Assembly (NCBI GenBank): GCA_964187785.1
Contig: OZ076419.1
Location: forward strand, 20,584,001-20,648,000
Direction of reading: 5' to 3'
Source: Amphiscolops sp. MND2022
Taxonomy: Eukaryota
Length of the DNA: 64,000 nt
The notes below the pieces were generated by a model. It was given only the letters and a program-made list of their open reading frames with translations, was not told the origin of the DNA and searched no databases. The number at the start of each line of letters is the position of its first letter. The stretch's first letter is position 1. Made by a program: the position numbers and the translations under genes. Shown here one piece after another: positions 7,796-40,312 of this stretch.

Positions 7796-8289
7796 CAAAA
7801 AACAATCAGGATGCTGTCAAGATTAGGCTTCGATGCCATTGGTGGAGCCTCTCCTGAGCCACCCCTGAGGGACGGGTGTAAGGGTACAGCCCATATAACT
7901 GAAGGTTTTTTTTACCGTGATGCAAAAATGTTACCATGAACCCGATATTGAGGAAGCAGAAAAGCGCTAGGTAGAGAGTAAAATGAAAAATCAAACGGAA
8001 ATCACATGCCTTACAATGAGACAAAAATAAGATGAGAATGTGTCATGACCGAAATCAAAAGTGCAGTTATTCACGCGATTAAATTCAACACATTAAAACC
8101 GGAACTTTGGAAGGCTTGAAGACGGCGTTAACTGGCAGTCAAGTAATGATAGACGACACCGTTCTTTATAGAGATGTACTTAAATCTGGCAAAGAATTCG
8201 CAGTAGTGTTTCTTGGGAATGTCGACTCGGCGGTGTGAGAAACTGTTGAAGACATTCATGCCGATGCGACCTTTAAAGAAGTCTGTTAT

Positions 8290-8660: not shown

Positions 8661-9949
8661 TAATAGTCGGGCTCATTTTGTGGATGGAATGAGTCGTACT
8701 CACTAAAGTCTCGTATGGAAGTTGTAGAACACAACAGCGAGTTGGCGAAGGGAGTTGAAATTACGGACCCAAGAATAGAACGGAGAGAATCTCCTTCGAT
8801 GTTGGCTGATCTGGAGTTGAGTCGTATATCATGTGGGTTGGGGATGAGTGAACTGGAAGCTGCTTTAGAATCTTTCGTTAACAACGATAACACTCAACTT
8901 GCCCTTTAATTGAACTTTTTCTCGAAGGAATGATGTACTTCAAAGCAGTCAACGATCCAGCGTTGATGGGAGATTTTCTAATTTTGAACGACTGTCAAAT
9001 ATTAAGCAAGCTGAATTCGGAGAACTTTCAAATGTTAGCGATTGTTTGAAGAGTTTGCAAACAGACAAAACGGCGAGTCTGAAAGTTGGGGATCCGCGTC
9101 ATCGAGTTGGAGATCCTCATGTGGAAGGTGGTACAGTTGCGAAAATTCCGAGTTTGGAAGTTGGAAATAGTTCGGAAAGACAAAACTGCGAGTCTGAAAA
9201 TTGGAGATCCGCGACTGCAAGTTGGAGATCGTCATTTGGAAGGTGGTACAGTTGCATTTCAAGGTTGAAAGTTGGAGCTCAAGAAAAATCTCACGAATTA
9301 GCCGCCGAGACACACATTGATCCAAATGCAAGCATAGAATGGAACGTGCAAAGAGCTTCCTAAGCGCGAAATGATGGAAACCATGATACAAGCGAAACAG
9401 ACTCAAGTGATGCTGATGTTTCTAATGATACGGAGGTTGACACTGGAGAACCAAAATTACGTCCCATTAAAAAATTACCGGAGCAAACGCCCCTCAGTGG
9501 AAAAATGTTATTCTTTGCTCAAAGGTAGTACATGAAATGAGTGATCATTTCAGTAACCTGCGTAAACTTTCACAGAGTGACCCTTAACATACCAGAGTAC
9601 TATCAAAACGGATCAGTGCTTTTTGTGCAATGTTTGTAATCTGATGATGAGTGATAAGCACAGGCACACAAAGGAACACAATGCTGAGAGAAGTGGAGAA
9701 CGCGAGGACAGCAGTTTGTTTCCTTCGAGCATTGTTGCAATAGAGAACTTTGAAAGTGACCTACACTTACCGAATTCTCAGTTTGTCGAGGAGTGGATTA
9801 GTCATCAAATAGGCACATTTTCTGATGAAGATGTATCGGGACATTGGGACATAATCGTAACTCAAAAAACTTTATGTAAAGCAATTCACCCAACTGCCAC
9901 ACTGACAGTTGCGTTTTGCTGACACTTGCTTTAGCTGTTTTTGTGAGAA

Positions 9950-10790
9950 ATTGTTTGGACGAAAAATCTTACCCGAATTACAGTGGCCAATTACATTTGT
10001 AGTTTGGAGAAACTAATCAAGTACGCCAAGGCTTATAAACCATCGCGAATCGCTGGACGTGCCCAAGTTGACTGGCTCGTCATATCGAAGGATGTAAAAG
10101 CCCGTTATCAGAAGGGTTCTTTGAAAGACAGGAGACAAACGCGTCAAAAATTATTCCAAAAAGTTCCTGACTTGAATCATCTAGCTGCGGTTCAATTCAA
10201 AATCACAGATTTGTGCAATGAAAATGTTTCGAAAAAATTTTTCAACTTGGATGAACTCAAATGCTTCAACTTCATCACCGTGCTCGAATCTGAACGGTCG
10301 TCCTGGTTCCATAAACGACTTGACATGGTCTCTCGTGAGAGAGATCAGTAAGGAAGGTCAGTATGATGGCGACAATCATAAAACCGGCCGCTACTATGAT
10401 ATTAAACTCAAGTTTCATAAAGATCAGTTTCCTTTGCTGAAAAGATTGAAGGGAGAGTTCAAGAAAAACCACGGATACGTCGGTACAGTTTTTGACACCC
10501 AGAAAAATAAAAGACCATTCCCTGGCCAACTTTATCGAAGTTCGAGAAGGATTTCAATGGGAATTCAATTCGTAAAAGTGGGAGACATGTTTTTCATATC
10601 AAACATGAATAGAGCCATGAAGAACTGGCATTCCACCAAACACAAAGCGCTCACAGGAAGGAGACAGCAGAAGGACATTATGTGAAGCACAGCTCTGAAG
10701 CCAACGACTTCTATCGTGACACGATAAAACGTGCCGTTCAAAAAAAACAGCGGTACTCCTTCAGAAACCAAACTTCATCTTCTTTTGAAA
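9950..10790 (+). pseudogene. Tyrosine-recombinase domain (Crypton-like), long unit 1, frameshifted
   Basis: TVANYICSLEKLIKY (core-binding-like), NGRPGSINDLTW (box I Arg, 10296), NHKTG (Lys, 10377), NMNRAMK (box II Arg) and KHSSEANDFY (His and catalytic Tyr), spread over three frames. Confidence 0.75.
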
Positions 10791-12194
10791 CTCCTTCGCC
10801 TTCTTTGATGAGCAGATATTCAGAAGGCAATCTTCATTCTGGTACTCCTGCCCAGAAACGACAGAAGACAGTGACAATGGTTACTCCTGATGTCAATTCT
10901 CGTGTCCAAAACCGACCAACGTCATCAGCGACGACTGTTACTACTGAAGGCAGCACTCCTGCCCAAAAGCGACGAAAGTCAACAGCGACGATTGTCACAC
11001 CTGAAATAAGTTCGACTCCAGTTCCACCCATCAATGTTGAAAGTCATAGCAAAGAGAATAGCGAGTCGTATATCATGTGGGGGTTGGGGATGAGTGAACT
11101 GGAAGGTGCTTTAAAATCTTTCGTTAACAACGACAACACTCAACTTGCCCTTTAATTGAACTCTTTTCTCGAAGGAATGATGTACTTCAAAGCAGTCAAC
11201 GATCCAGCGTTGATGGGAGATTTTCTAATTTTGAACGACTGTCAAATATTAAGCAAGCTGAATTCGGAGAACTTTCAAATGTTAGCGATTGTTTAAAGAG
11301 CTTGCAGAGACAAAACGGCGAGTCTGAAAGTTTGGGATCCGCGTCTGCAAGTTGGATATTGCATTTGGAAGGTGGCACAATTGCGAGTATTCTGAGTTTG
11401 GATGTTGGAAATCGTTTGGAAACAGACAAAACTGCGAGTCTGAAAATTGGAGATCCGAGACTGCAAGTTGGAGATCGTCATTTGGAAGGTGGTACAGTTG
11501 CAAGTATTTCAAGGTTGAAAGTTGGAGCTCAAGAAAGTTCTCACAAATTAGCCGCCGAGACACATATTGATCCCAATGCAAGCATAGAATGGAACGTGCA
11601 AAGAGCTTCCTATGCGCGAAATGATGGAAACGATGATACAAGCGAAACAGACTCAAGTGATGCTGATGTTGATAATGATACGGAGGTTGACACTGGAGAA
11701 CCAAAATTACGTCCCATTAAAAAACTACCGGAGCAAACGCCCCTCAGTGGAAAAATGTATTCTTTGCTCAAAGGTAGTAAATGAAATGAGTGATCATTTC
11801 AGTAACCTGCGTAAACTTTCACAGAGTGACCCCTAACATACCAGAGTACTATCGAAACGGATCAGTGCTTCTTGTGCAATGTTTGTAATCTGAGGATGAG
11901 TGATAAGCACAGGCACACAAAGGAACACAATGCTGAGAGAAGTGGAGAACGCGAGGACATCAGTTTGTTTCCTTCGAGCATTGTTGCAATAGAGAACTTT
12001 CAAAGTGGCCTTACCGAATTCTCAGTTTGTCGAGGAGTGGATTAGTCATCAAATAGGCACATTTTCTGATGGAGATGTATCGAGACATTGGGACATACCC
12101 GTAACTCAACAAACTTTATGTAAAGCAATTCACCCTACTGCCACACTGACAGTTGCGTTTTGCTGACACACTTGCTCTAGCTGTCTTTGTAAGA

Positions 12195-13020
12195 AATTGT
12201 TTGGACGAAAAATCTTACCCGAATTACAGTGGCCAATTACATTTGTAGTTTGGAGAAACAAATCAAGTACGCCAAGGCTTATAAATCATCGCGAATCGCT
12301 GGACGTGCCCAAGTTGACTGGCTCGTCATATCGAAGGATGTAAAAGCCCGTTATCAGAAGGGTTCTTTGAAAGACAGGAGACAAACGCGTCAAAAATTAT
12401 TCCAAAAAGATCCTGACTTGAATCATCTAGCTGCGGTTCAATTCAAAATCACAGATTTGTGCAATGAAAATGTTTCGAAAAAGTTTTTCAACTTGGATGA
12501 TCTCAAATGCTTCAACTTCATCACCGTGCTCGAATCTGAACGGTCGTCCTGGTTCCATAAACGACTTGACATGGTCTCTCGTGAGAGAGATCAGTAAGGA
12601 AGGTCAGTATGATGGCGACAATCATAAAACCGGCCGCTACTATGATATTAAACTCAAGTTTCATAAAGATCAGTTTCCTTGGCTGAAAAGATTGAAGGGA
12701 GTGTTCAAGAAAAACCACGGATACGTCGGTAGTTTTTGACACCCAGAAAAACAAAAGACCATTCCCTGACCAACATTATCGAAGTTCGAGAAGGATTTCA
12801 ATGGAAATTCAATTCGTAAAAGTGGGAGACATGTTTTTCATAACAAACATGAATAGAGCCATGAAGAACTGGCATTCCACGAAACACAAAGCGCTCACAG
12901 AAAGGAGACAGCAGAAGGCTCTGAAGCCAGCGACTTCTATCGTGACACGATAAAACGTGCCGTTCAAAAATTAAACAGCGGTACTACTTCAGAAATCAAA
13001 CTTCCTCTTCCTTTGAAACT
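12195..13020 (+). pseudogene. Tyrosine-recombinase domain, long unit 2
   Basis: Same GRPG, HKT and NR motifs and the DFY tyrosine, but a small deletion near 12918 removes the KHS residues. Confidence 0.7.
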
Positions 13021-16000
13021 CCTTCGTCTTCTTTGATGAGCAGATATTCAGAAGGCAATCTTCATTCTGGTACTCCTGCCCAGAAACGACAGAAGACAGT
13101 GACAATGGTTACTCCTGATGTCAATTCTCGTGTCCAAAACCGAACAACGTCATCAGCGACGACTGTTACTACTGAAGGCAACACTCCTGTCCAAAAGCGA
13201 CGAAAGTCAACAGCGAAGATTGTCACACCTGAAATAAGTTCGACTCCAGTTCCACCAATCAATGTTGAAAGTCATAGCAAAGAGAATAGCGAGTCGTATA
13301 TCATGTGGGTTGGGATGAGTGAACTGGAAGGTCCTTTAGAATCTTTCGTTAACAACGACAACACTCAACTTGCCCTTTAATTGAACTCTTTTCTCGAAGG
13401 AATGATGTACTTCAAAGCAGTCAACGATCCAGCGTTGATGGGAGATTTTCTAATTTTGAACGACTGTCAAATATTAAGCAAGCTGAATTCGGAGAACTTT
13501 CAAATGTTAGCGATTGTTTAAAGAGTTTGCAAAGAGACAAAACGGCGAGTCTGAAAGTTTGGGATCCGCGTCTGCAAGTTGGACATTGCATTTGGAAGGT
13601 GGCACAATTGCGAGTATTCTGAGTTTGGATGTTGGAAATCGTTTGGAAACAGACAAAACTGCGAGTCTGAAAATTGGAGATCCGCGACTGCAAGTAGATC
13701 GTCATTTGGAAGGTGGTACAGTTGCAAGTATTTCAAGGTTGAAAGTTGGAGCTCAAGAAAATTCTCACAAATTAGCCGCCGAGACACACATTGATCCAAA
13801 TGCAAGCATAGAATGGAACGTGCAAAGAGCTTCCTATGCGCGAAATGATGGAAACGATGATACAAGCGAAACAGACTCAAGTGATGCTGATGTTGATAAT
13901 GATACGGAGGTTGACACTGGAGAACCAAAATTACGTCCCATTAATAAGCTACCAGAGCAAACGCCCCTCAGTGGAAAAGTGTATTCTTTGCTCAAAGGTA
14001 GTGCATGAAATGAGTGATCATTTCAGTAACCTGCGTAAACTTTCACAGAGTGACCTTTAACATACCAGAGTACTATCAAAACGGATCAGTGCTTTTTGTG
14101 CAATGTTTGTAATCTGAGGATGAGTGATAAGCACAGGCACACAAAGGAACACAATGCTGAGAGAAGTGGAGAACGCGAGGACATCAGTTTGTTTCCTCTG
14201 ATCATTGTTGCAATAGAGAACTTTGAAAGTGACCTACACTTACCGAATTCTCAGTTTGTCGAGGAGTGGATTAGTCATCAAATAGGCATATTTTCTGATG
14301 GAGATGTATCGGGACAATGGGACATACCCGCAACTCAAAAAACTTTATGTAAAGCAATTCACGCAACTGCCACACTGACAGTTGCGCTTTGCTGACACAC
14401 TTGCTCTAGCTGTCTTTGTTTTGTGGGAAATTGTTTGGACAAAAAATCTTACCCGAATTACAGTGGCCAATTACATTTGTAGTTTGGAGAAACTAATCAA
14501 GTACGCCAAGGCTTATAAACCATCGCAAATCGCTGGACGTTCCCAAGTTGAAACTCCTTCGTCTTCTTTGATGAGCAGATATTCAGAAGGCCATCTTCAT
14601 TCTGGTACTCCTGCCCAGAAACGACAGAAGACAGTGACAATGGTTACTCCTGATGTCAATTCTCGTGTCCAAAACCGACCAACGTCATCAGCGACGACTG
14701 TTACTACTGAAGGCAGCACTCCTGTCCAAAAGCGACGAAAGTCAACAGCGACGATTGTCACACCTGAAATAAGTTCGACTCCAGTTCCACCCATCAATGT
14801 TGAAAGTCGTAGCAAAGAGAATAGCGAGTCGTATATCGTGTGGGGGTTGGGGTTGAGTGAACTGGAAGGTGCTTTAAAATCTTTCGTTAACAACGACAAC
14901 ACTGAATTTGCCCTTCAATTGAACTTTTTTCTCGAAGGAATGATGTACTTCAAAGCAGTCAACGATCCAGCGTTGATGGGAGATTTTCTAATTTTGAACG
15001 ACTGTCAAATATTAAGCAAGCTGAATTCGGAGAACTTTCAAATGTTAGCGATTGTTTAAAGAGTTTGCAGAGACAAAACGGCGAGTGTGAAAGTTTGGGA
15101 TCCGCGTCTGCAAGTTGGAGATTGCATTTGGAAGGTGGCACAATTGCGAGTATTATGAGTTTGGATGTTGGAAATCGTTTGGAAACAGACAAAACTGCGA
15201 GTCTGAAAATTGGAGATCCGAGACTGCAAGTTGGAGATCGTCATTTGGAAGGTGGTACAGTTGCAAGTATTTCAAGGCTGAAAGTTGGAGCTCAAGAAAA
15301 TTCTCACAAATTAGCCGCCGAGACACATATTGATCCCAATGCAAGCATAGAATGGAACGTGCAAAGAGCTTCCTATGCGCGAAATAATGGAAACGATGAT
15401 ACAAGCGAAACAGACTCAAGTGATGCTGTTGTTGATAATGATACGGAGGTTGACACTGGAGAACCAAAATTACGTCCCATTAAAAAACTACCGGAGCAAA
15501 CGCCCCTCAGTGGAAAAATGTATTCTTTGCTCAAAGGTAGTACATGAAATGAGTGATCATTTCAGTAACCTGCGTAAACTTTCACAGAGTGACCTTTAAC
15601 ATACCAGAGTACTATCAAAACGGATCAGTGCTTTTTGTGCAATGTTTGTAATCTGAGGATGAGTGATAAGCACAGGCACACAAAGGAACACAATGCTGAG
15701 AGAAGTGGAGAACGCGAGGACATCAGTTTGTTTCCTTCGAGCATTGTTGCAATAGAGAACTTTCAAAATGGCCTTACCGAATTCTCAGTTTGTCGAGGAG
15801 TGGATTAGTCATCAAATAGGCACATTTTCTGATGGAGATGTATCGAGACATTGGGACATACCCGTAACTCAAAAAACTTTATGTAAAGCAATTCACCCTA
15901 CTGCCACACTGACAGTTGCGTTTTGCTGACACACTTGCTCTAGCTGTCTTCGTGAGAAATTGTTTGGACGAAAAATCTTACCCGAATTACATTGGCCAAT

Positions 16001-19000
16001 TACATTTGTAGTTTGGAGAAACTAATCAAGTACGCCAAGGCTTATAAATCATCGCAAATCGCTGGACGTTCCCAAGTTGAAACTCCTTCGTCTTCTTTGA
16101 TGAGCAGATATTCAGAAGGCAATCTTCATTCTGGTACTCCTGCCCAGAAACGACAGAAGACAGTGACAATGGTTACTCCTGATGTCAATTCTCGTGTCCA
16201 AAACCGACCAACGTCATCAGCGACGACTGTTACTACTGAAGGCAGCACTCCTGTCCAAAAGCGACGAAAGTCAACAGCGACGATTGTCACACCTGAAATA
16301 AGTTCGACTCCAGTTCCACCAATCAATGTTGAAAGTCATAGCAAAGAGAATAGCGAGTCGTATATCATGTGGGTTGGGATGAGTGAACTGGAAGGTCCTT
16401 TAGAATCTTTCGTTAACAACGACAACACTCAACTTGCCCTTTAATTGAACTCTTTTCTCGAAGGAATGATGTACTTCAAAGCAGTCAACGATCCAGCGTT
16501 GATGGGAGATTTTCTAATTTTGAACGCCTGTCAAATATTAAGCAAGCTGAATTCGGAGAACTTTCAAATGTTAGCGATTGTTTAAAGAGTTTGCAAAGAG
16601 ACAAAACGGCGAGTCTGAAAGTTTGGGATCCGCGTCTGCAAGTTGGAGATTGGATTTGGAAGGTGGCACAATTGCGAGTATTCTGAGTTTGGATGTTGGA
16701 AATCGTTTGGAAACAGACAAAACTGCGAGTCTGAAAATTGGAGATCCGCGACTGCAAGTAGGAGATCGTCATTTGGAAGGTGGTACAGTTGCAAGTATTT
16801 CAAGGTTGAAAGTTGGAGCTCAAGAAAATTCTCACAAATTAGCCGCCGAGACACACATTGATCCAAATGCAAGCATAGAATGGAACGTGCAAAGAGCTTC
16901 CTATGCGCGAAATGATGGAAACGATGATACAAGCGAAACAGACTCAAGTGATGCTGATGTTGATAATGATACGGAGGTTGACACTGGAGAACCAAAATTA
17001 CGTCCCATTAATAAGCTACCAGAGCAAACGCCCCTCAGTGGAAAAGTGTATTCTTTGCTCAAAGGTAGTGCATGAAATGAGTGATCATTTCAGTAACCTG
17101 CGTAAACTTTCACAGAGTGACCTTTAACATACCAGAGTACTATCAAAACGGATCAGTGCTTTTTGTGCAATGTTTGTAATCTGAGGATGAGTGATAAGCA
17201 CAGGCACACAAAGGAACACAATGCTGAGAGAAGTGGAGAACGCGAGGACATCAGTTTGTTTCCTTCGAGCATTGTTGCAATAGAGAACTTTCAAAATGGC
17301 CTTACCGAATTCTCAGTTTGTCGAGGAGTGGATTAGTCATCAAATAGGCACATTTTCTGATGGAGATGTATCGAGACATTGGGACATACCCGTAACTCAA
17401 AAAACTTTATGTAAAGCAATTCACCCTACTGCCACACTGACAGTTGCGTTTTGCTGACACACTTGCTCTAGCTGTCTTTGTGAGAAATTGTTTGGACGAA
17501 AAATCTTACCCGAATTACATTGGCCAATTACATTTGTAGTTTGGAGAAACTAATCAAGTACGCCAAGGCTTATAAATCATCGCAAATCGCTGGACGTTCC
17601 CAAGTTGAAACTCCTTCGTCTTCTTTGATGAGCAGATATTCAGAAGGCAATCTTCATTCTGGTACTCCTGCCCAGAAACGACAGAAGACAGTGACAATGG
17701 TTACTCCTGATGTCAATTCTCGTGTCCAAAACCGACCAACGTCATCAGCGACGACTGTTACTACTGAAGGCAGCACTCCTGTCCAAAAGCGACGAAAGTC
17801 AACAGCGACGATTGTCACACCTGAAATAAGTTCGACTCCACTTCCACCAATCAATGTTGAAAGTCATAGCAAAGAGAATAGCGAGTCGTATATCATGTGG
17901 GTTGGGATGAGTGAACTGGAAGGTCCTTTAGAATCTTTCGTTAACAACGACAACACTCAACTTGCCCTTTAATTGAACTCTTTTCTCGAAGGAATGATGT
18001 ACTTCAAAGCAGTCAACGATCCAGCGTTGATGGGAGATTTTCTAATTTTGAACGACTGTCAAATATTAAGCAAGCTGAATTCGGAGAACTTTCAAATGTT
18101 AGCGATTGTTTAAAGAGTTTGCAAAGAGACAAAACGGCGAGTCTGAAAGTTTGGGATCCGCGTCTGCAAGTTGGAGATTGGATTTGGAAGGTGGCACAAT
18201 TGCGAGTATTCTGAGTTTGGATGTTGGAAATCGTTTGGAAACAGACAAAACTGCGAGTCTGAAAATTGGAGATCCGCGACTGCAAGTAGGAGATCGTCAT
18301 TGGGAAGGTGGTACAGTTGCAAGTATTTCAAGGTTGAAAGTTGGAGCTCAAGAAAATTCTCACAAATTAGCCGCCGAGACACACATTGATCCAAATGCAA
18401 GCATAGAATGGAACGTGCAAAGAGCTTCCTATGCGCGAAATGATGGAAACGATGATACAAGCGAAACAGACTCAAGTGATGCTGATGTTGATAATGATAC
18501 GGAGGTTGACACTGGAGAACCAAAATTACGTCCCATTAATAAGCTACCAGAGCAAACGCCCCTCAGTGGAAAAGTGTATTCTTTGCTCAAAGGTAGTGCA
18601 TGAAATGAGTGATCATTTCAGTAACCTGCGTAAACTTTCACAGAGTGACCTTTAACATACCAGAGTACTATCAAAACGGATCAGTGCTTTTTGTGCAATG
18701 TTTGTAATCTGAGGATGAGTGATAAGCACAGGCACACAAAGGAACACAATGCTGAGAGAAGTGGAGAACGCGAGGACATCAGTTTGTTTCCTTCGAGCAT
18801 TGTTGCAATAGAGAACTTTCAAAATGGCCTTACCGAATTCTCAGTTTGTCGAGGAGTGGATTAGTCATCAAATAGGCACATTTTCTGATGGAGATGTATC
18901 GAGACATTGGGACATACCCGTAACTCAAAAAACTTTATGTAAAGCAATTCACCCTACTGCCACACTGACAGTTGCGTTTTGCTGACACACTTGCTCTAGC

Positions 19001-20524
19001 TGTCTTTGTGAGAAATTGTTTGGACGAAAAATCTTACCCGAATTACATTGGCCAATTACATTTGTAGTTTGGAGAAACTAATCAAGTACGCCAAGGCTTA
19101 TAAATCATCGCAAATCGCTGGACGTTCCCAAGTTGAAACTCCTTCGTCTTCTTTGATGAGCAGATATTCAGAAGGCAATCTTCATTCTGGTACTCCTGCC
19201 CAGAAACGACAGAAGACAGTGACAATGGTTACTCCTGATGTCAATTCTCGTGTCCAAAACCGACCAACGTCATCAGCGACGACTGTTACTACTGAAGGCA
19301 GCACTCCTGTCCAAAAGCGACGAAAGTCAACAGCGACGATTGTCACACCTGAAATAAGTTCGACTCCAGTTCCACCCATCAATGTTGAAAGTCAAAGCAA
19401 AGAGAATACCGAGTCGTATATCATGTGGGTTGGGGATGAGTGAACTGGAAGGTCCTTTAGAATCTTTCGTTAACAACGACAACACTCAACTTGCCCTTTA
19501 ATTGAACTCTTTTCTCGAAGGAATGATGTACTTCAAAGCAGTCAACGATCCAGCGTTGATGGGAGATTTTCTAATTTTGAACGACTGCCAAATATTAAGC
19601 AAGCTGAATTCGGAGAACTTTCAAATGTTGGCGATTGTTTGAAGAGTTTGCAAAGAGACAAAACGGCGAGTCTGAAAGTTTGGGATCCGCGTCTGCAAGT
19701 TGGAGATTGCATTTGGAAGGTGGCACAATTGCGAGTATTCTGAGTTTGGATGTTGGAAATCGTTTGGAAACAGACAAAACTACGAGTCTGAAAATTGGAG
19801 ATCCGCTACTGCAAGTTGGAGATCGTCATTTGGAAGGTGGTACAGTTGCAAGTATTTCAAGGTTGAAAGTTGGAGCTCAAGAAAATTCTCACAAATTAGC
19901 CGCCGAGACACACATTGATCCAAAGACAAGCATAGAATGGAACGTGCAAAGAGCTTCCTATGCGCGAAATGATGGAAACGATGATACAAGCGAAACAGAC
20001 TCAAGTGATGCTGATGTTGATAATGATACGGAGGTTGACACTGGAGAACCAAAATTACGTCCCATTAATAAGCTACCAGAGCAAACGCCCCTCAGTGGAA
20101 AAGTGTATTCTTTGCACAAAGGTAGTGCATAAAATGAGAGATCATTTCAGTAACCTGCGTAAACTTTCACAGAGTGACCCTTAACATACCACAGTACTAT
20201 CGAATCGGATCAGTGTTTTCTGTGCCATGTTTGTAATCTGAGGATGGGTGATAAACACAGGCACCCAAAGGAACACAATGCAGAGAGAAGTGGAGAACGC
20301 GAGGACATCAGTTTGTTTCCTCTGAGCATTGTTGCAATAGAGAACTTTGAAAGTTTGTCGAGGAGTGGATTAGTCATCAAATAGGCATATTTTCTGACGG
20401 AGATGTATCGGGACAATGAGACATACCCGCAACTCAAAAAACTTTATGTAAAGCAATTCACGCAACTGCCACACTGACAGTTGCGTTTTGCTGACACACT
20501 TGCTCTAGCTGTCTTTGTGGGAAA

Positions 20525-21372
20525 TTGTTTGGACGAAAAACCTTACCCGAATTACAGTGGCCAATTACATTTGTAATTTTTGGAGAAACTAATCAAGTAC
20601 GCCAAGGCTTATAAACCATCGCAAATCGCTGGACGTGCCCAAGTTGACTGGCTCGTCATATCGAAGGATGTAAAAGCCCGTTATCAGAAGGGTTCTTTGA
20701 AAGACAGGAGACAAACGCGTCAAAAATTATTCCAAAAAAGTTCCTGACTTGAATCATCTAGCTGCGGTTCAATCCAAAATCACATATTTGTGCAATGAAA
20801 AAGTTTTTCAACTTGGATGAACTCAAATGCTTCAACTTCATCACCGTGCTTGAATCTGAACGGTCGTCCTGGTTCCATAAACGACTTGACATGGTCTCTC
20901 GTGAGAGAGATCAGAAAGGAAGGTCAGTATGATTACGACAATCATAAAACCGGCAGCTACTATGATATTAAACAAGTTTCATAAAGATCAGTTTCCTTTG
21001 CTGAAAAGATTGAAGGGAGAGTTCAAGAAAAACCACGGATACGTCGGTACAGTTTTTGACACCCAGAAAAATAAAAGACCATTCCCTGGCCAACTTTATC
21101 GAAGTCCGAGAAGGATTTCAACGGGAATTCAATTCGTAAAAGTGGGAGACATGTTTTTCATAACAAACATGAATAGAGCCATGAAGAACTGGCATTCCAC
21201 CAAACACAAAGCGCTCACAGGAAGGAGACAGCAGAAAGACATTGTGAAGCACAGCTCTGAAGCCAGCGACTTCTATCGTGACACGATAAAACGTGCCGTT
21301 CAAAAATTAAACAGCGGTACTACTTCAGAAATCAAACTTCCTCTTCCTTTGAAACTCCTTCGTCTTCTTTGA
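20525..21372 (+). pseudogene. Tyrosine-recombinase domain, third long unit (array unit 7)
   Basis: ORF 20929-21372 carries NMNRAMK...IVKHSSEASDFY in one frame (His codon 21250, Tyr codon 21274). GRPG and HKT lie upstream in a shifted frame. Confidence 0.75.
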
Positions 21373-24300
21373 TGAGCAGATATTCAGAAGGCAATCTTCA
21401 TTCTGGTACTCCTGCCCAGAAACGACAGAAGACAGTGACAATGGTTACTCCTGATGTCAATTCTCGTGTCCAAAACCGACCAACGTCATCAGCGACGACT
21501 GTTACTACTGAAGGCAGCTCTCCTGTCCAAAAGCGACGAAAGTCAACAGCGACGATTGTCACACCTGAAATAAGTTCGACTCCAGTTCCACCAATCAATG
21601 TTGAAAGTCATAGCAAAGAGAATAGCGAGTCGTATATTATGTGGGTTGGGGATGAGTGAACTGGAAGGTCCTTTAGAATCTTTCGTTAACAACGACAACA
21701 CTCAACTTGCCCCTTAAAGAACTCTTTTTTTCGAAGGAATGATGTACTTCAAAGCAGTCAACGATCCAGCGTTGATGGGAGATTTTCTAATTTTGAACGA
21801 CTGCCAAATATTAAGCAAGCTGAATTCGGAGAACTTTCAAATGTTAGCGATTGTTTAAAGAGTTTGCAAAGAGACAAAACGGCGAGTCTGAAAGTTTGGG
21901 ATCCGCGTCTGCAAGTTGGAGATTGCATTTGGAAGGTGGCACAGTTGCGAGTATTCTGAGTTTGGATGTTGGAAATCGTTTGGAAACAGACAAAACTCCG
22001 AGTCTGAAAATTGGAGATCCGCGACTGCAAGTTGGAGATCGTCATTTGGAAGGTGGTACAGTTGCAAGTATTTCAAGGTTGAAAGTTGGAGCTCAAGAAA
22101 ATTCTCACAAATTAGCCGCCGAGACACACATTGATCCAAAGGCAAGCATAGAATGGAACGTGCAAAGAGCTTCCTATGCGCGAAATGATGGAAACAATGA
22201 TACAAGCGAAACAGACTCAAGTGATGCTGATGTTGATAATGATACGGAGGTTGACACTGGAGAACCAAAATTACGTCCCATTAATAAACTACCAGAGCAA
22301 ACGCCCCTCAGTAGAAAAGTGTATTCTTTCCTCAAAGGTAGTGCATAAAATGAAAGATCATTTCAGTAACCTGCGTAAACTTTCACAGAGTGACCCTTAA
22401 CATAACACAGTACTATCAAATCTGATCAGTGCTTTCTGTGCAATTTTTGTAATCTGAGGATGGGTGATAAACACAGGCACCCGAAGGAACACAATGCAGA
22501 GAGAAGTGGAGAACGCGAGGACATCAGTTTGTTTCCTCTGAGCATTGTTGCAATAGAGAACTTTGAAAGTTTGTCGAGGAGTGGATTAATCATCAAACAG
22601 GCATATTTTCTGATGGAGATGTATCGCGACAATGGGACATACCCGCAACTCAAAAAACTTTATGTAAAGCAATTCACGCAACTGCCACACTGACAGTTGC
22701 GTTTTCCTGACACACTGTCTTTGTGGGAAGTTGTTTGGACGAAAAATCTTACCCGAATTACAGTGGCCAATTACATTTGTAATTTTTGGAGAAACTAATC
22801 AAGTACGCCAAGGCTTATAAACCATCGCAAATCGCTGGACGTTCCCAAGTTGAAACTCCTTCGTCTTCTTTGATGAGCAGATATTCAGAAGGCAATCTTC
22901 ATTCTGGTACTCCTGCCCAGAAACGACAGAAGACAGTGACAATGGTTACACCTGATGTCAATTCTCGTGTCCAAAACCGACCAACGTCATCAGCTACGAC
23001 TGTTACTACTGAAGGCAGCACTCCTGTCCAAAAGCGACGAAAGTCAACAGCGACGATTGTCACACCTGAAATAAGTTCGACTCCAGTTCCACCCATCAAT
23101 GTTGAAAGTCATAGCAAAGAGAATAGCGAGTCGTATATCATGTGGGTTGGGGATGAGTGAACTGGAAGGTCCTTTAGAATCTTTCGTTAACAACGACAAC
23201 ACTCAACTTGCCCTTTAATTGAACTCTTTTCTCGAATGTACTTCAAAGCAGTCAACGATCCAGCGTTGATGGGAGATTTTCTAATTTTGAACGACTGCCA
23301 AATATTAAGCAAGCTGAATTCGGAGAACTTTCAAATGTTAGCGATTGTTTAAAGAGTTTGCAAAGAGACAAAACGGCGAGTCTGAAAGTTTGGGATCCGC
23401 GTCTGCAAGTTGGAGATTGCATTTGGAAGGTGGCACAGTTGCGAGTATTCTGAGTTTGGATGTTGGAAATCGTTTGGAAACAGACAAAACTCCGAGTCTG
23501 AAAATTGGAGATCCGCGACTGCAAGTTGGAGATCGTCATTTGGAAGGTGGTACAGTTGCAAGTATTTCAAGGTTGAAAGTTGGAGCTCAAGAAAATTCTC
23601 ACAAATTAGCCGCCGAGACACACATTGATCCAAAGGCAAGCATAGAATGGAACGTACAAAGAGCTTCCTATGCGCGAAATGATGCAAACGATGATACAAG
23701 CGAAACAGACTCAAGTGATGCTGATGTTGATAATACGGAGGTTGACACTGGAGAACCAAAATTACGTCCCATTAATAAACTACCAGAGCAAACGCCCCTC
23801 AGTAGAAAAGTGTATTCTTTGCTCAAAGGTAGTGCATAAAATGAAAGATCATTTCAGTAACCTGCGTAAACTTTCACAGAGTGACCCTTAACATAACACA
23901 GTACTATCAAATCGGATCAGTGCTTTCTGTGCAATTTTTGTAATCTGAGGATGGGTGATAAACACAGGCACCCGAAGGAACACAATGCAGAGAGAAGTGG
24001 AGAACGCGAGGACATCAGTTTGTTTCCTCTGAGCATTGTTGCAATAGAGAACTTTGAAAGTTTGTCGAGGAGTGGATTAGTCATCAAATAGGCATATTTT
24101 CTGATGGAGATGTATCGCGACAATGGGACATACCCGCAACTCCAAAAACTTTATGTAAAGCAATTCACGCAACTGCCACACTGACAGTTGCGTTTTCCTG
24201 ACACACTTGCTCTAGCTGTCTTTGTGGGAAATTGTTTGGACGAAAAATCTTACCCGAATTACAGTGGCCAATTACATTTGTAATTTTTGGAGAAACTAAT

Positions 24301-25734
24301 CAAGTACGCCAAGGCTTATAAACCATCGCAAATCGCTGGACGTTCCCAAGTTGAAACTCCTTCGTCTTCTTTGATGAGCAGATATTCAGAAGGCAATCTT
24401 CATTCTGGTACTCCTGCCCAGAAACGACAGAAGACAGTGACAATGGTTACTCCTGATGTCAATTCTCGTGTCCAAAACCGACCAACGTCATCAGCTACGA
24501 CTGTTACTACTGAAGGCAGCACTCCTGTCCAAAAGCGACGAAAGTCAACAGCGACGATTGTCACACCTGAAATAAGTTCGACTCCAGTTCCACCCATCAA
24601 TGTTGAAAGTCATAGCAAAGAGAATAGCGAGTCGTATATCAAGTGGGTTGGGGATGAGTGAACTGGAAGGTCCTTTAGAATCTTTCGTTAACAACGACAA
24701 CACTCAACTTGCCCTTTAATTGAACTCTTTTCTCGAATGTACTTCAAAGCAGTCAACGATCCAGCGTTGATGGGAGATTTTCTAATTTTGAACGACTGCC
24801 AAATATTAAGCAAGCTGAATTCGGAGAACTTTCAAATGTTAGCGATTGTTTAAAGAGTTTGCAAAGAGACAAAACGGCGAGTCTGAAAGTTTGGGATCCG
24901 CGTCTGCAAGTTGGAGATTGCATTTGGAAGGTGGCACAGTTGCGAGTATTCTGAGTTTGGATGTTGGAAATCGTTTGGAAACAGACAAAACTCCGAGTCT
25001 GAAAATTGGAGATCCGCGACTGCAAGTTGGAGATCGTCATTTGGAAGGTGGTACAGTTGCAAGTATTTCAAGGTTGAAAATTGGAGCTCAGGAAAATTCT
25101 CACAAATTAGCCGCCGAGACACACATTGATCCAAAGGCAAGCATAGAATGGAACGTACAAAGAGCTTCCTATGCGCGAAATGATGGAAACGATGATACAA
25201 GCGAAACAGACTCAAGTGATGCTGATGTTGATAATGATACGGAGGTTGACACTGGAGAACCAAAATTACGTCCCATTAATAAACTACCAGAGCAAACGCC
25301 CCTCAGTAGAAAAGTGTATTCTTTGCTCAAAGGTAGTGCATAAAATGAAAAATCATTTCAGTAACCTGCGTAAACTTTCACAGAGTGACCCTTAACATAA
25401 CACAGTACTATCAAATCGGATCAGTGCTTTCTGTGCAATTTTTGTAATCTGAGGATGGGTGATAAACACAGGCACCCGAAGAAACACAATGCAGAGAGAA
25501 GTGGAGAACGCGAGGACATCAGTTTGTTTCCTCTGAGCATTGTTGCAATAGAGAACTTTGAAAGTTTGTCGAGGAGTGGATTAGTCATCAAATAGGCATA
25601 TTTTCTGATGGAGATGTATCGCGACAATGGGACATACCCGCAACTCCAAAAACTTTATGTAAAGCAATTCACGCAACTGCCACACTGACAGTTGCGTTTT
25701 CCTGACACACTTGCTCTAGCTGTCTTTGTGGGAA

Positions 25735-26590
25735 ATTGTTTGGACGAAAAATCTTACCCGAATTACAGTGGCCAATTACATTTGTAATTTTTGGAGAAAC
25801 TTATCAAGTACGCCAAGGCTTATAAACCATCGCAAATCGCTGGACGTGCCCAAGTTGACTGGCTCGTCATATCGAAGGATGTAAAAGCCCGTTATCAGAA
25901 GGGTTCTTTGAAAGACAGGAGACAAACGCGTCAAAAATTATTCCAAAAAAGTTCCTGACTTGAATCATCTAGCTGCGGTTCAATCCAAAATCACATATTT
26001 GTGCAATGAAAAAGTTTTTCAACTTGGATGAACTCAAATGCTTCAACTTCATCACCTGGCTTGAATCTGAACGGTCGTCCTGGTTCCATAAACGACTTGA
26101 CATGGTCTCTCGTGAGAGAGATCAGAAAGGAAGGTCAGTATGATTACGACAATCACAAAACCGGCAGCTACTATGATATTAAACTCAAGTTTCATAAAGA
26201 TCAGTTTCCTTTGCTGAAAAGATTGAAGGGAGAATTCAAGAAAAACCACGGATACGTCGGTACAGTTTTTGACACCCAGAAAAATAAAAGACCATTCCCT
26301 GGCCAACTTTATCGAAGTTCGAGAAGGATTTCAATAGGAATTCAATTCGTAAAAGTGGGAGACATATTTTTCATAACAAACATGAATAGAGCCATGAAGA
26401 ACTGGCATTCCACCAAACACAAAGCGCTCACAGGAAGGAGACAGCAGAAGGACATTATGTGAAGCACAGCTCTGAAGCCAGCGACTTCTATCGTGACACG
26501 ATAAAACGTGCCGTTCAAAAATTAAACAGCGGTACTACTTCAGAAATCAAACTTCCTCTTCCTTTGAAACTCCTTCGTCTTCTTTGATGA
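25735..26590 (+). pseudogene. Tyrosine-recombinase domain, fourth long unit (array unit 10)
   Basis: ORF 26028-26462 reads NLNGRPGSINDLTW...NHKTGSYY...NMNRAMK; HSSEASDFY follows after a frameshift. Confidence 0.72.
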
Positions 26591-29500
26591 GCAGATATTC
26601 AGAAGGCAATCTTCATTCTGGTACTCCTGCCCAGAAACGACAGAAGACAGTGACAATGGTTACTCCTGATGTCAATTCTCGTGTCCAAAACCGACCAACG
26701 TCATCAGCGACGACTGTTACTACTGAAGGCAGCTCTCCTGTCCAAAAGCGACGAAAGTCAACAGCGACGATTGTCACACCTGAAATAAGTTCGACTCCAG
26801 TTCCACCAATCAATGTTGAAAGTCATCGCAAAGAGAATAGCGAGTCGTATATCATGTGGGTTGGGGATGAGTGAACTGGAAGGTCCTTTAGAATCTTTCG
26901 TTAACAACGACAACACTCAACTTGCCCTTTAATTGAACTCTTTTCTCGAAGGAATGATGTACTTCAAAGCAGTCAACGATCCAGCGTTGATGGGAGATTT
27001 TCTAATTTTGAACGACTGTCAAATATTAAGCAAGCTGAAATCGGAGAACTTTCAAATGTTACCGATTGTTTAAAGAGTTTGCGAAGAGACAAAACGGCGA
27101 GTCTGAAAGTTTGGGATCCGCGTCTGCAAGTTGGATATTGCATTTGGAAGGTGGCACAATTGTGAGTATTTTGAGTTTGGATGTTGGAAATCGTTTGAAA
27201 CAGACAAAACTGCGAGTCTGAAAATTGGAGATCCGCGACTGCAAGTAGGAGATCGTCATTTGGAAGGTGGTACAGTTGCAAGTATTTCAAGGTTGAAAGT
27301 TGGAGCTCAAGAAAATTCTCACAAATTAGCCGCCGAGACACACATTGATCCAAATGCAAGCATAGAATGGAACGTGCAAAGAGCTTCCTATGCGCGAAAT
27401 GATGGAAACGATGATACAAGCGAAACAGACTCAAGTGATGCTGATGTTGATAATGATACGGAGGTTGACACTGGAGAACCAAAATTACGTGCCATTAATA
27501 AGCTACCAGAGCAAACGCCCCTCAGTGGAAAAGTGTATTCTTTGCTCAAAGGTAGTGCATAAAATGAGAGATCATTTCAGTAACCTGCGTAAACTTTCAC
27601 AGAGTGACCCTTAACATACCACAGTACTATCAAATCGGATCAGTGCTTTCTGTGCAATGTTTGTAATCTGAGGATGGGTGATAAACACAGGCACCCAAAG
27701 GAACACAATGCAGAGAGAAGTGGAGAACGCGAGGACATCAGTTTTTTTCCTCTGAGCATTGTTGCAATAGAGAACTTTGAAAGTGACCTACACTTACCGA
27801 ATTCTCAGTTTGTCGAGGAGTGGATAAGTCATCAAATAGGCATATTTTCTGATGGAGATGTATCGGGACAATGGGACATACCCGCAACTCAAAAAACTTT
27901 ATGTAAAGCAATTCACGCAACTGCCACACTGACAGTTGCGCTTTGCTGACACACTTGCTCTAGCTGTCTTAGTGGGAAATTGTTTGGACGAAAAATCTTA
28001 CCCGAATTACAGTGGCCAATTACATTTGTAGTTTGGAGAAACTAATCAAGTACGCCAAGGCTTATAAACCATCGCAAATCGCTGGACGTTCCCAAGTTGA
28101 AACTCCTTCGTCTTCTTTGATGAGCAGATATTCAGAAGGCAATCTTCATTCTGGTACTCCTGCCCAGAAACGACAGAAGACAGTGACAATGGTTACTCCT
28201 GATGTCAATTCTCGTGTCCAAAACCGACCAACGTCATCAGCGACGACTCTGTGTGATAGGGGCAGGATTGTGTATTTGCAGTTGGAAGCCGGAAGTATTC
28301 ATCGAATCTAGTGTGCAAAAGGGGAGTACATACAGTAGTAGCATTCCAGTTTGTTTTATCATTCTGAAGTGGCGTGCTTGAGTTGACATGAAATGAGATT
28401 TGATTGGTGCAATAATTTTTACACTGTTGTTTCTATAAAACTTGTTGTTTTGTCATTCGTTTATATTTCTCTGGATAGTTGGTTAATAGTTGTATGCTTG
28501 AAATTTCTGGCTTGAATAAAATTACTGAACAGCTCCCAAGAGTGCAAAAGATGGGAAAACATCTTTGGGCTGCTTCTAATGTCAAAAAATTTTGTGGAAC
28601 TTATTTTCGTTTTTCACGAGAGTTGACAAAGCCATGTCGCAGAATCTACTGAAAAACTGGGGTCTTTTCTTTTATCCCCCCAGCCTACTAGGCTTAAAAT
28701 TTTCCCTCATCAACATTTCATTTTTTAGGATATGAATCGTAGTATATGACTCACTCCTCAATGAATTGGGGGAGGGGGTAGGGTGACAAATCTGCTGCCG
28801 GAACAGAAAAGACCCAACCTATCAAAGACGTGAAAAACTGGAAATTTGCGGAAAATTGATTTCAGATCGTGAGAGCTGTGATTTGTCTCCACCAAGCATT
28901 GATTTTGCCTTTAACCTACAATATTCGAGTCTTTTCTGTCATTTCCCCCAAAACTCATTAAGAAGTGTTTTCTATTCGAGTTGCTTCGATTCTTTGTTAC
29001 CCCAGTTTGTCCTCATTTGAATGCATTAACTATGACCTAGCTGCTGCTTTTACGGGTTTCTCGGTTCCGCTAGTTGCATTTCGTGAAAAGCCAGTTGCAC
29101 TTGTTTAAACGTCAGTTTCAGATCGCAGAGAGCCAGTTGTGCATGGTTCGCTGCACAGCGTTATTTTGTAATTGAAACTGTGAATTTCGTTTGAATTTTG
29201 AATGTTTTATGCGCTACCTATGTATTACCAAATGCAGTCCAAACCTGTAAAGAACAGTTGAAGGATCTAATCGATCGTTTGAGGAGCTTTTTTCTTTGGT
29301 TTTACCTTGGTTATTAGTTCTGGAATAGTGAAGCGCCAGCTAGCATTTACAGCAAAGCGCCAGTAATTAGTAGTCGCTGAGTTGGCGTTTTACAGTTCCA
29401 ACAGAGGATGCCACTTTTGGTAAACTCCTAGTTTTTTGTCCTCCCGCCGTGTTAAACGCCAGTTGCTTATCACTTTTTGACAAAAATTCGATGACCATAA

Positions 29501-30325
29501 GCGTAGTAGATGGGTAGATCAAATCCATAGTTCACATGGGTGGACCAACCTTATGGGTCTAGTGACGCGAATAACGTCTGAGGATTAATGTCTAAAGGTG
29601 TTTTGTGAAAAACATCTAAAAATCAATGTGTTAGAATACGGATTGAGCATGTCATGCCTTTAGACGATATTCCCATGTTGCTTTTAGATCCTTAGACGTT
29701 CCCGCACCCCTTCTGGGTCCTCGAAACTAACTCCATGGGATTTCAATTTCACGCGATACCTTGGGCAGTGCTTTGTCTTAGTTTGTTAGCGCAATACTTG
29801 TTTGAAAAAAGTGAATTTTGAGGATGATCGCCGCCTTTATTGCGGGCATTTCAACCAGATTAGCTAAAATGAGATTTTTAATGTAATGACCACATGTATG
29901 GTGAAATTTTGTTCAGGCGAAATATCACTGCAGTCAAGCCGAGGATACTTTGAGCCACCTTATACGTGAACGCGCCAAAAATATGATAGGAAGAAAGTTT
30001 CAGCAAGGATGGATAGAGGGATAACGTCGAGTCGGGACGCTATCTCCGAATTTTGATTCTCGCATTAGTACGGAGAAATGTATCTTTCTTCCAAATATGA
30101 TAATTTCAATTGAATGCACGTGACATGGTTTCAGATCCGGGTAAAAAAAGCGAAATACGGATTGGACATGCCAGACGGTTTTTAGATGTCGCCTTTAGAC
30201 ATTAATCCGTGCTTGTCTTGACGATTATCTGCGAATCGTTTTTTAGGGTCTCCTTCGATGTGTTACAACTATTTTCGTACTTGTAGATCACTGAGTATTA
30301 CTTAAGTTTCTTGGTTTCCTTTCAG

Positions 30326-30780
30326 ATTTCGAAACTTTGTGAAAGTTTTGAGATGGTACGTTCGCGACAGCTAGTCAAATGGAGGCGTGATCCGAACAAC
30401 TACCTGGACGACGACCCTCCAGACTTCATTGTCAAAAATTCACTGAGCATAAATGCAAGTCGTTGGCCTCTTTGGACCCGAAGTTTCGATACGAGGCAGT
30501 TTCTAATAGTCTACAGGGGAGATCGAGTATCAGGTGGAGATAGCTCCGATAACGTGTACACATTTGATTCTGGACCTCCTCATTTTGTGTTAATTGATTC
30601 ATCAAAACAAGAAGATTGCTTGGCGAGGTATCTCAATGATTCGGATAGTAAATTTGAAGAAAATTGTCGGCCAGTCCAGTTTTGTGATAAACAGGGTCAA
30701 ACCAACATTGCGTTTTACAGCACTCGAGAAAGAACTCCGATACAATCATCAGTGCGTTGAGGCGCAGTGGAAACAGGCAG
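30326..30780 (+). pseudogene. SET domain (PR-Set7/KMT5A-like lysine methyltransferase fold), frameshifted near its C-terminus
   Basis: DPPDFIVKNS...FLIVYRGDRV...NVYTF...LIDSSKQEDCLARYLNDS...ENC...IAFYSTR, then ELRYN in the next frame (30732). These match the SET motifs YxG, RxxNHS and ELxYDY. A polypyrimidine-CAG acceptor precedes 30326. Confidence 0.75.
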
Positions 30781-31182
30781 CTGTAAAGTCAGTGAATGCA
30801 GGAGGTACAAAAGAATCAGAACCCAGAGAAAGAATTGAAGAGGATGAAAAACCAGAGACAGATCATGTAGTTCTTGGAGAACCACTAACTGTTAACACAG
30901 AACTAACTCTTAACCAAAACACTGAGGAACAAATTGCGAGCAACAGTTTCGATCTTCTTGAAATTTCCAATGAATTTGACATTGATTCTATTGAAATCAG
31001 CCCCTTTCTTGAATCTTCTCAAAAAATGGAATGCCAAGCCCAAAATCCCGGTAACTTTAGTAACATAACGTCCAAGAATTTTCTCACTGAGAAGGAGCCA
31101 GGAGCCGGACTCTTTGGAATGGCAAACTCCAACCACCTTCAACCGTCCAATCAACCATGTTTAATGACAAACTTGGAACTCA

Positions 31183-32126
31183 CCAATGACGTGGCCACCA
31201 AAAGAGATCACTCCCGTCAATGACGGGCCTACATGAAGAGAGCCAAAAGAGATCACTCCCGCCAATGACGGGCCTCCGCCAAAAGAGATCACTCCCGCCA
31301 ATGACGGGCCTCCGCCATAAGAGATCACTCCCGCCAATGACGGGCCTCCGCCAAAAGAGATCACTCCCGCCAGTGACGGTCCTCCGCCAAAAGAGATCAC
31401 TCCCGCCAATGACGGACCTCCACCAAACGAGATCACTCCCGCCAATGACGGGCCTCCGCCAAAAGAGGTCACTCCCGCCATTGACGGGTCTCCACCAAAG
31501 AGATCACTCCCGCCAGTGACGGGCCTCCACCAAAAGAGATCATTCCCGCCAGTGACGGGCCTCCACCAAAAGAGATCATTCCCGCCAATGACGGGCCTCC
31601 ACCAAAAGATACATCACGCCAATGACGGGCCTCCACCAAAAGATCACTCCCGCCAATGACGGGCCCCCACCAAAAGAGGTCACTCCTGCCAATGACGAGC
31701 CCCACCAAAAAAGGTAACTCCCGCCAATGACGGTCCTCCACCAAAAGAGATCATTCCCGCCAATGACGGGCCTCCACCAAAAGATACCTCACGCCAATGA
31801 CGGGCCTCCACCAAAAGATCACTCCCGCCAATGACGGGCCCCCACCAAAAGATGTCACCCCCGCCAATGACGGGCCCCACCAAAAGAGGTCACTCCCGCC
31901 AATGACGGTCCTCCACCAAAAGAGATCATTCCCGCCAATGACGGGCCTCCACCAAAATATCAATCACGCCAATGACGGGCCTCCACCAAAAGATCACTCC
32001 CGCCAATGACGGGCCCCCACCAAACGAGGTCACTCTCGCCAATGACGGGCCCCCACCAAAAGAGGTCACTCCCGCCAATGACGGGCCTCCACCAAAAGAA
32101 GTCACTCCGCCACTGACAGGCCTCCA
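31183..32126 (+). repeat. 36-bp minisatellite (~26-27 units, some 33-34 bp), likely coding (NDGPPPKEITPA)n
   Basis: Consensus aatgacgggcctccaccaaaagagatcactcccgcc; units abut directly with no spacers. It lies between the SET domain and the zinc fingers. Confidence 0.95.
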
Positions 32127-32269
32127 GTAAATGACGTTACCAAAGTAAATATTTCAGAACTGTTTCTTTATGGCAAGGACGAAGAAGATTCTCAAGGCAA
32201 AAAAGAAAAACGTAATCGCCATCGTCGAAATAAACTGAAAACTTGTCTTCACTATGCAACATGAGTTGA

Positions 32270-33010
32270 ATGACTCTCATACTTTCATTGATGGCCCTGT
32301 TTCAAAGTTCATACAGTCACACCAGAGGTGACTCCTCTGATAAGGAGAGGTCTGATGCTGAATCTACTGGAGAACACGAGGAGACCCAATGGGCCACCAG
32401 AAATTCGAAACACAAAGACCAGAAATTGAGAAGTGTCTTATCTGTAACAAAAATGTAAAGAAAATGCGTGATCACTGAGTAAGGCACACCACCTCGGTGA
32501 TGAACCCCGAGCAAAAAACTTTCTGGGCACTCATTATTCAAACTAGTCCACAGTTGCTACGCTGCTACTAATGCCTAGTTTGTTTAACAAGAATGAGCTT
32601 CAATGCTACACATCCAAAACAAGCTGCAGAGGATCTTTAATCGAGGAGATATCCAGCTCTTTCCAATGGAGGTTCAACTCACACTTCGTCGGCTCAAAGA
32701 GTCACTTGCTAAGCCCTATGAGAACATAGTTGAGCAATTCAACAGCTATATGGGGCCATCGCATCGGTTTCAAAAGTGAGCTCCACACTGAAGGTCTTCA
32801 TTGGTCAAAACATTTTGCAAACCAAAGAATTTAGTTCGACGACAGCTTGCTGCTTGTGTGCAGAAGTGCTCGCGGGAGCTCGGACTCGCTATCAAAGTGC
32901 AGCGCAGAAAGAAAAGAGACAGAAATCTAAAGAGCTGTATGCCAAAGTAACGACTTTGAAAGAAGTGCAGGAGATTAATTCTCTGATTCAAGACTTTCTA
33001 CATTCGAATT
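32270..33010 (+). pseudogene. Acidic linker, two zinc-finger motifs and N-terminal part of the recombinase; diverged paralog of the array gene
   Basis: KCLICNKNVKKMRDH (32431) matches array KCILCSKVVHKMRDH. RCY*CLVCLTRMS matches QCFLCNVCNLRMS. ARTRYQSAAQKEKRQKSKELYAKVTTL matches VKARYQKGSLKDRRQTRQKLFQKVPDL. Confidence 0.7.
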
Positions 33011-33089
33011 AATCGGAAAGTCCTCCATTATAAAGAATTCTCAACGATTTTTTTGCTGCTTTCGTTTAGACTTAAGGGCGGGCATAAAT

Positions 33090-40310: not shown

Positions 40311-40312
40311 TT

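Follow-up and report, generated by a model that had tools for sequence, protein, structure and literature searches.

Mobile elements are known to read chromatin, through integrase chromodomains, and to be silenced by it. In the chromoviruses, which are long terminal repeat (LTR) retrotransposons of the Ty3/gypsy group, the chromodomain of the integrase reads a chromatin mark. A different arrangement is found in primates, where the host gene SETMAR has captured a dead DDE transposon. Cryptons are DNA transposons that encode a tyrosine recombinase, and their movement is presumed to proceed via a circle (Goodwin et al. 2003; Kojima and Jurka 2011, PMC3212892). A methyltransferase-like domain is also carried by DIRS elements (PMC13465315). 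Insertion into multicopy repeated targets is almost confined to non-LTR retrotransposons, with Dada as the exception among DNA transposons (PMC3706591). Here, we analyze a 64,000-nt window of the Amphiscolops sp. MND2022 genome (C11:20,584,001-20,648,000), and the family of transposons represented in it, whose single protein combines a SET domain with a tyrosine recombinase. We refer to these as SET-recombinase elements.

Positions 8706-33018 of the window are two dead copies of such a DNA transposon, elements A and B, arranged head to tail. An earlier note, made from the letters of the window, had described two adjacent paralogous genes; the two copies are instead elements of different subfamilies. 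Our overall reading, to which we assign a probability of roughly 0.85, is that both are relics of Crypton-like transposons with one protein, running from a SET domain through repeats, an acidic patch and two zinc fingers to a tyrosine recombinase, that the family moves by a circle mechanism acting on AGT tracts, and that a tandem array arose in element A by amplification of an internal piece.

Intact elements elsewhere in the genome

We searched the genome (1.07 Gb) with two queries from the window: the SET piece at 30287-30757 and the recombinase piece at 26010-26459. Both matched one and the same open frame of ~1,384 codons at at least 11 loci, with 36% identity for the SET domain and 79% for the recombinase. 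In other, more diverged subfamilies, at least eight in number, the two queries likewise fell in a single frame, here of 856-1110 amino acids (aa). The ancestral open reading frame (ORF) joining SET to recombinase, which the earlier note had reconstructed from two damaged copies and proposed to look for in the host genome, thus exists in natural, intact form. At one locus, L029:3414-7529, the intact ORF encodes 1,372 aa from a TTG codon, or 1,365 aa from the first ATG (protein P0001). The SET domain (aa 40-140) is followed by coding repeats of 19-20 aa, an acidic patch, zinc fingers (aa ~717-800), the recombinase (aa ~810-1165) and a Ser/Lys-rich tail. At the DNA level, the coding repeats of this element are 57-60 bp long (L029:4298-5323), and its 3' part holds five copies of a non-coding 173-bp tandem repeat (L029:8564-9423).

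Six copies were compared, one each on C2, C3, C4 and C9 and two on C11. From a single sharp left boundary onwards, they are 99.99-100% identical, and five are full-length; that on C3 ends prematurely and has a second copy, 97.8% identical, in tandem behind it. The body of the intact element measures 9,349 bp, starts with ACTTGGCTG and ends with ATTAATTAGAT. (AGT)n adjoins both ends of the intact copies, always on the sense strand and in tracts of very different lengths, and the flanks of the copies, on at least five chromosomes, are unrelated to one another. The defined termini with short direct repeats that would mark a mobile element were therefore found, as sharp ends with (AGT)n on both sides. 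The only symmetry between the two termini is a perfect 11-bp inverted repeat, TGGCGCTTTGC, set 11 bp in from the 5' end and 10 bp in from the 3' end; the score of this arm alone is unremarkable compared with shuffled sequences, and what makes it notable is the matching offset at the two ends. The element encodes no reverse transcriptase, and it contains one ORF of at least 90 aa apart from ORFs that overlap it. In other subfamilies, whose ends were judged from 3.4-kb loci, (AGT)n also stands ahead of the SET ORF at three loci (L010-L012).

The genome further contains many decayed and truncated copies of the family. Given the defined (AGT)n ends and the 99.99-100% identity among copies, the element is predicted to be mobile at present or to have been so very recently. 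Contigs from a marine metagenome and from a second organism carry the whole ORF (L029:3414-7532) at ~95% identity, which would point either to a close relative of the host or to transfer between species.

Recombinase and SET domains of the intact protein

A HMMER scan of 1.84 billion representative proteins returned 134 relatives of the recombinase, and a word-indexed protein search returned four relatives each for the recombinase and SET regions. We aligned 24 recombinase relatives (alignment A1) and numbered residues according to the intact protein. R998, within LNGRPGP, is invariant, and HKTG (1024-1027), R1101-K1102 of NSIRK, H1129 and Y1138 are conserved in at least 90% of the sequences, which confirms five of the six catalytic residues. 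The motifs GRPG, HKTG and NSIRK, which had been singled out from the window, retain their assignment as the first Arg, the Lys and the second Arg. The catalytic Tyr had been placed in HSSE..DFY; it is the Y of AHY, nine residues from H1129.

The AlphaFold model of aa 800-1200 has a predicted local distance difference test (pLDDT) score of 85.4. All of its top 50 Foldseek matches in the PDB are tyrosine recombinases, and VIA-align gave Z scores of 10-12 over 253-296 residues, covering both domains, with XerH, the Tn1549 integrase, lambda integrase and Cre. Matches in Swiss-Prot were mostly XerC and XerD. By these comparisons, the C-terminal part of the intact protein has the fold of a two-domain tyrosine recombinase, composed of a helical core-binding domain and a catalytic domain. 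A kinship with the DUF3504 recombinases of Cryptons was not recovered: PF12012 (DUF3504) has 24 matches in the genome, none of them at SET-recombinase loci, and the intact ORF gave no score against it. By the DUF3504 measure, this recombinase lineage would lie outside CryptonA. One DUF3504 locus, unrelated to the SET-recombinase loci, carries three such domains at a spacing of 993 bp in a single 1,055-aa frame (C3:2082695-2085130).

The N-terminal domain is recognized directly by Pfam: aa 40-140 of the intact ORF score 35 bits against PF00856, above the gathering cut-off of 22.4 (E 2e-8). P0055, a distant metagenomic SET-recombinase protein, also scores for PF00856. The nearest PDB sequences are the SET domains of KMT2A and KMT5A, which match aa 36-148 weakly (E 4e-4 to 0.05). 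In the family SET alignment, GxG and ELRY(S/N/D)Y are conserved. Between subfamilies, the ratio of non-synonymous to synonymous substitution rates (dN/dS) of the SET segment is 0.08-0.18, with dS saturated; pairs with L009 and L010 were left out, as internal stops had shifted their codon alignment. In an independent comparison, with the ~95% identical copy of the second organism, the first 220 codons yielded 31 listed differences, 23 of them at third positions (p 4e-6), and SET codons 40-140 hold 14 synonymous and 4 non-synonymous differences, against 4 and 6 in the linker that follows. As judged by these codon comparisons, the SET domain is under purifying selection. Separately, ~80 matches across the genome (e.g. 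C8:53045233-53045604) consist of a 132-aa open frame that is 36% identical to the window SET piece. Many of these are mutually identical, and they possibly represent the SET exon of a high-copy subfamily whose transcripts are spliced.

The two dead copies in the window

The features of both copies, whose domains were recognized in the window only through their intact relatives, are listed in Table 1.

Table 1. Features of elements A and B and of the adjoining retroelement fragment, in window coordinates
Feature	Position	Strand	Remarks
Element A	8706-29370	+	5'-truncated relic; SET domain and 5' end gone
Macrosatellite of 11 tandem units	8819-28248	+	edges mapped by alignment
Long units	8835-11081, 11082-13306, 19428-21643, 24639-26858 (U10)	+	
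Unit U10	24639-26858	+	best-preserved; several frame changes needed, tblastn pieces in frames 3, 2, 1
U10 second zinc finger (CFLCNFCN..H.H..H)	25401-25592	+	tblastn
U10 recombinase catalytic piece	26010-26459	+	LNGRPG (first Arg) and NHKTG (Lys)
U10 catalytic piece in another frame	26318-26542	+	NSIRK (second Arg) and SAHRKETAEGHY (His, nucleophile Tyr)
Element A 3' terminal region	28975-29370	+	last 400 bp of intact element, blastn 74%, E 1e-66
Element A subterminal arm GCAAAGCGCCA	29352-29362	+	inverted partner of arm 29383-29393
AGTAGT between elements A and B	29369-29374	+	remnant of (AGT)n target microsatellite
Element B	29379-33018	+	second subfamily; decayed, 3'-truncated; 5' end GAGTTGGCGTTTTACAG
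Element B subterminal arm TGGCGTTTTAC	29383-29393	+	9/11 positions as in intact family TGGCGCTTTGC
SET relic	30356-30727	+	family SET profile, hhalign probability 99.9%, E 6.5e-35
36-bp coding repeat (NDGPPPKEITPA)n	31243-32126	+	25 copies, frameshifted; Tandem Repeats Finder, translation
Element B two zinc fingers	32398-32622	+	tblastn to intact aa 717-790 and to P0003/P0004
Start of recombinase N-terminal (core-binding) domain	32857-33018	+	first ~50 residues; last recognizable part of element B
Antisense retroelement fragment	33092-34589	-	adjoins element B; translation

The lineage of element A is a sister of the intact 1,372-aa family. Its 5' limit is set by the match to the intact element, which begins at 8706 (blastn), and by the match to the intact protein, which begins with aa 196 at 8715 (tblastn). 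By tblastn, each unit of the macrosatellite is an internal fragment of the element: it covers aa ~230-1248 of the intact protein, with collapsed internal repeats, and where it ends at aa ~1248 the sequence returns to aa ~230. The units follow one another as two long, four short, one long, two short, one long and one short, the last being truncated. Spacings are 2213-2250 bp for long units and 1494-1539 bp for short ones, and pairwise identity among the 11 units is 94.5-99.6%. One deletion of ~700 bp is common to all short units; it removes aa 955-1164 (tblastn), and with them the catalytic core, from 7 of the 11.

On both sides of the array, parental sequence has survived. Ahead of it, 8706-8819 corresponds to aa ~192-230 and lies outside the repeat, and behind it stand a short piece of the 3' untranslated part (28525-28620) and the 3' terminal region. 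These flanks indicate that element A extends over the whole of 8706-29370 and that its middle was amplified in place. The earlier note had taken the array for a gene with repeats, an acidic patch, fingers and a recombinase. These parts are indeed present in the units, but the gene is not: the 11 tandem units contain stops and frameshifts throughout, none keeps to a single frame, and no ORF is longer than 225 aa. Within U10, the piece at 26010-26459 aligned with the recombinase profile A1 at an hhalign probability of 98.8% (E 5.4e-17), and that at 26318-26542 is equivalent to intact aa 1091-1166 (74% identity, tblastn). The second zinc finger has a weak Pfam zf-AN1 match, below cut-off. What looks like a second tandem array from a SET-recombinase element, with the SET domain included, was observed on the minus strand at C2:65004389-65008530 (L003-L005), where three SET pieces occur at a spacing of 1,875 bp.

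At the junction, element A ends with ...GCAAAGCGCCAGTAATT, followed by AGTAGT and then by the start of element B, GAGTTGGCGTTTTACAG. In the intact element, the 11-mer GCAAAGCGCCA stands 10 bp in from the 3' end, and the reverse complement of this 11-mer stands 11 bp in from the 5' end. Element B is related to the L002 locus (C1:18.75 Mb), with 78-82% DNA identity over 29468-32256, and its 5' end corresponds to L002 position 480. That this stretch reads, across its frame breaks, as SET domain, repeats, fingers and recombinase start was corroborated by hhalign, a repeat finder and tblastn. Its SET domain has lost GxG (NASRWPLW) and, to a frame break, ELRYxY; LARYLNDSD is kept. The recombinase start is a weak tblastn match to P0003 aa 761-814 (E 0.002). 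Pfam gave no score for the window SET piece itself, and nothing above cut-off for ten stop-to-stop pieces of the window. The window contains no N and no Rfam match.

A simple insertion of a long interspersed nuclear element (LINE) had been held to cut element B. The antisense fragment next to it includes, at 33092-33319, the reverse-transcriptase motif ..NYRPVSL.., with a piece resembling an endonuclease upstream of it; its nearest Atlas clusters are RVT_1 (score 0.93), and it has no Pfam match. The fragment lacks its 3' part, and tblastn with the intact protein did not find the rest of element B in the window beyond 33018, both of which speak against such an insertion. An (ACT)5 tract at 36507-36524 was considered as part of the element and rejected, its polarity being opposite to that of the element flanks. 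Farther downstream, 38566-49694 holds fragments of BEL/Pao-type LTR retrotransposons on both strands, with Peptidase_A17, DUF5641, integrase zinc-binding and core, and DUF1759 domains. A 24-bp tandem repeat of nine copies was detected at 40435-40655. Just upstream of the array, the same sequence occurs twice, ~2.58 kb apart (5110-5352 and 7694-7936), and both copies contain identical 81-aa and 78-aa reading frames on opposite strands.

Proposed mechanism, alternatives and comparison with known systems

We propose the following mechanism. The recombinase, guided by the zinc fingers, would bind the subterminal arms, and strand exchange between the two flanking (AGT)n tracts would excise a circle. 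This circle would then be re-inserted at another (AGT)n tract, with its orientation set by the polarity of AGT. Each insertion would recreate two targets, such that head-to-tail series of equally oriented elements would build up. Elements A and B, separated by AGTAGT, would be a series of this kind. By inspection, every pair of neighboring SET or recombinase matches within ~25 kb has the same orientation, with clusters at C4:35.988-36.008 Mb, C10:48.316-48.348 Mb and C1:60.539-60.548 Mb; duplication, instead of separate insertions, may account for some of these pairs. Element A would later have lost its 5' end, including the SET domain, and unequal crossing-over would most likely have multiplied a 2.2-kb internal piece into 11 units. 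Features common to adjacent long and short units suggest that the units were homogenized afterwards.

Several results weigh against our reading. Transposition was not directly seen, nor was any empty site, circle junction or transcript; the elements are known from assembled contigs, where tandem copies would mimic a circle junction. Across A1, the place of the first His in HxxR is taken by N, T, S or P (as in NSIRK and TPIRK). The profile and fold checks that the earlier note had suggested turned out as it expected for PF00856 and for the AlphaFold and Foldseek comparison, but not for PF00589: no Pfam recombinase model, this one included, matched the intact ORF at E<=0.1, and none matched ten long relatives at E<=0.01. 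A search of PDB sequences with the recombinase profile likewise found no solved relative. In the SET domain, the NH motif is ND (ARFIND) in all nine sequences of the family SET alignment, which makes catalysis uncertain, and the SET structure model, built from a 10-sequence alignment, has a pLDDT of 48, too poor for use.

The identity among the array units, together with the ORFs of 90-225 aa with recognizable motifs that each of them contains, could be taken to mean that the array is a working, repeated coding gene for zinc-finger/recombinase proteins. We consider this to be almost certainly wrong, as every domain is broken by stops or frameshifts, no unit keeps a single frame and most lack the catalytic core, the passage from aa ~1248 to aa ~230 contains neither a gene start nor a gene end, and the array was found only here in the genome. 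The array could also derive from circular DNA of the internal 2.2-kb fragment, made by the recombinase or extrachromosomal, copied by rolling circle and re-inserted. The presumed mechanism of the family does produce circles, and family fragments form tandem arrays elsewhere as well, as at C2:65.00 Mb; however, the unit junction lies inside the ORF rather than at the element arms, and the non-repeat parental sequence ahead of the array and the parental 3' end behind it fit amplification in place, making this origin improbable. As for the family as a whole, purifying selection on the SET domain and the lack of directly seen transposition would suit an immobile host multigene family spread by segmental duplication. 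This is very improbable given near-perfect identity over exactly 9.3 kb in unrelated surroundings, the (AGT)n bounds and subterminal inverted arms of each copy, and the abundance of decayed and truncated ones.

A last alternative concerns the SET domain. In SET enzymes, the His of the NH motif matters for activity, and in every subfamily of this genome it is replaced by Asp; P0055, the distant metagenomic relative, keeps NH. The domain could accordingly be catalytically dead and serve as a module that binds histone tails or other proteins and tethers the recombinase to chromatin, a possibility that we take seriously but hold to be rather unlikely. GxG, ELRYxY and the rest of the fold signature are under strong constraint, and the constrained Asp could still support cofactor binding. 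Considering the low dN/dS, the third-position bias and the ND in place of NH together, the SET domain is constrained yet non-canonical. Our best guess, which we offer tentatively, is that it methylates histone lysine at donor or target chromatin; a tether that binds the histone tail is the next most likely function.

Our search of the full-text literature, with Repbase and Dfam outside its scope, found no SET-recombinase transposon and no microsatellite-targeting Crypton, and the Crypton papers that we consulted do not mention a SET domain; the Dada paper describes no such element either. Possibly, though we remain doubtful, SET-recombinase elements constitute an undescribed superfamily of eukaryotic DNA transposons with directional insertion into (AGT)n and with their own histone-lysine methyltransferase acting on donor or target chromatin. 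If true, a mobile element would here be writing a mark on chromatin to its own advantage; a transposon with a selected histone-methyltransferase domain would mean that the element itself acts on chromatin. The family would also exemplify strict, directional microsatellite targeting by a recombinase-based DNA transposon, and its near-identical intact copies are suited to direct assays. To this, the window adds a head-to-tail junction with a target remnant and both recombinase arms, and an internal transposon fragment turned into a 19-kb macrosatellite.

Compared with known systems, SET-recombinase elements most resemble Cryptons, with which they have in common a single tyrosine-recombinase gene, the lack of reverse transcriptase and of long terminal repeats, short direct repeats at the boundary between element and target, and presumed movement via a circle. 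They differ from Cryptons in the N-terminal SET domain, the coding repeats, the two zinc fingers and the (AGT)n targets, and from CryptonA in that the ORF has no DUF3504 score. DIRS and Ngaro are likewise eukaryotic mobile elements with a tyrosine recombinase, but their terminal repeats are complex, and they encode reverse transcriptase along with RNase H. As in Dada and the microsatellite-specific non-LTR elements, the targets are multicopy repeats and host genes are spared; here, however, it is a recombinase-based DNA element that targets a microsatellite. The SET domain finds its best sequence matches of solved structure in KMT5A (SETD8/PR-Set7) and KMT2A, from which it differs by having ND for NH and no flanking pre-SET or post-SET modules. 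Like SETMAR, the family unites SET and a transposase in one protein, although here the fusion is the transposon's own protein, occurs in multiple copies and involves a tyrosine recombinase. Finally, as in the chromoviruses, a chromatin module is fused to the integrating enzyme, but the SET module comes from a family of enzymes that write marks.

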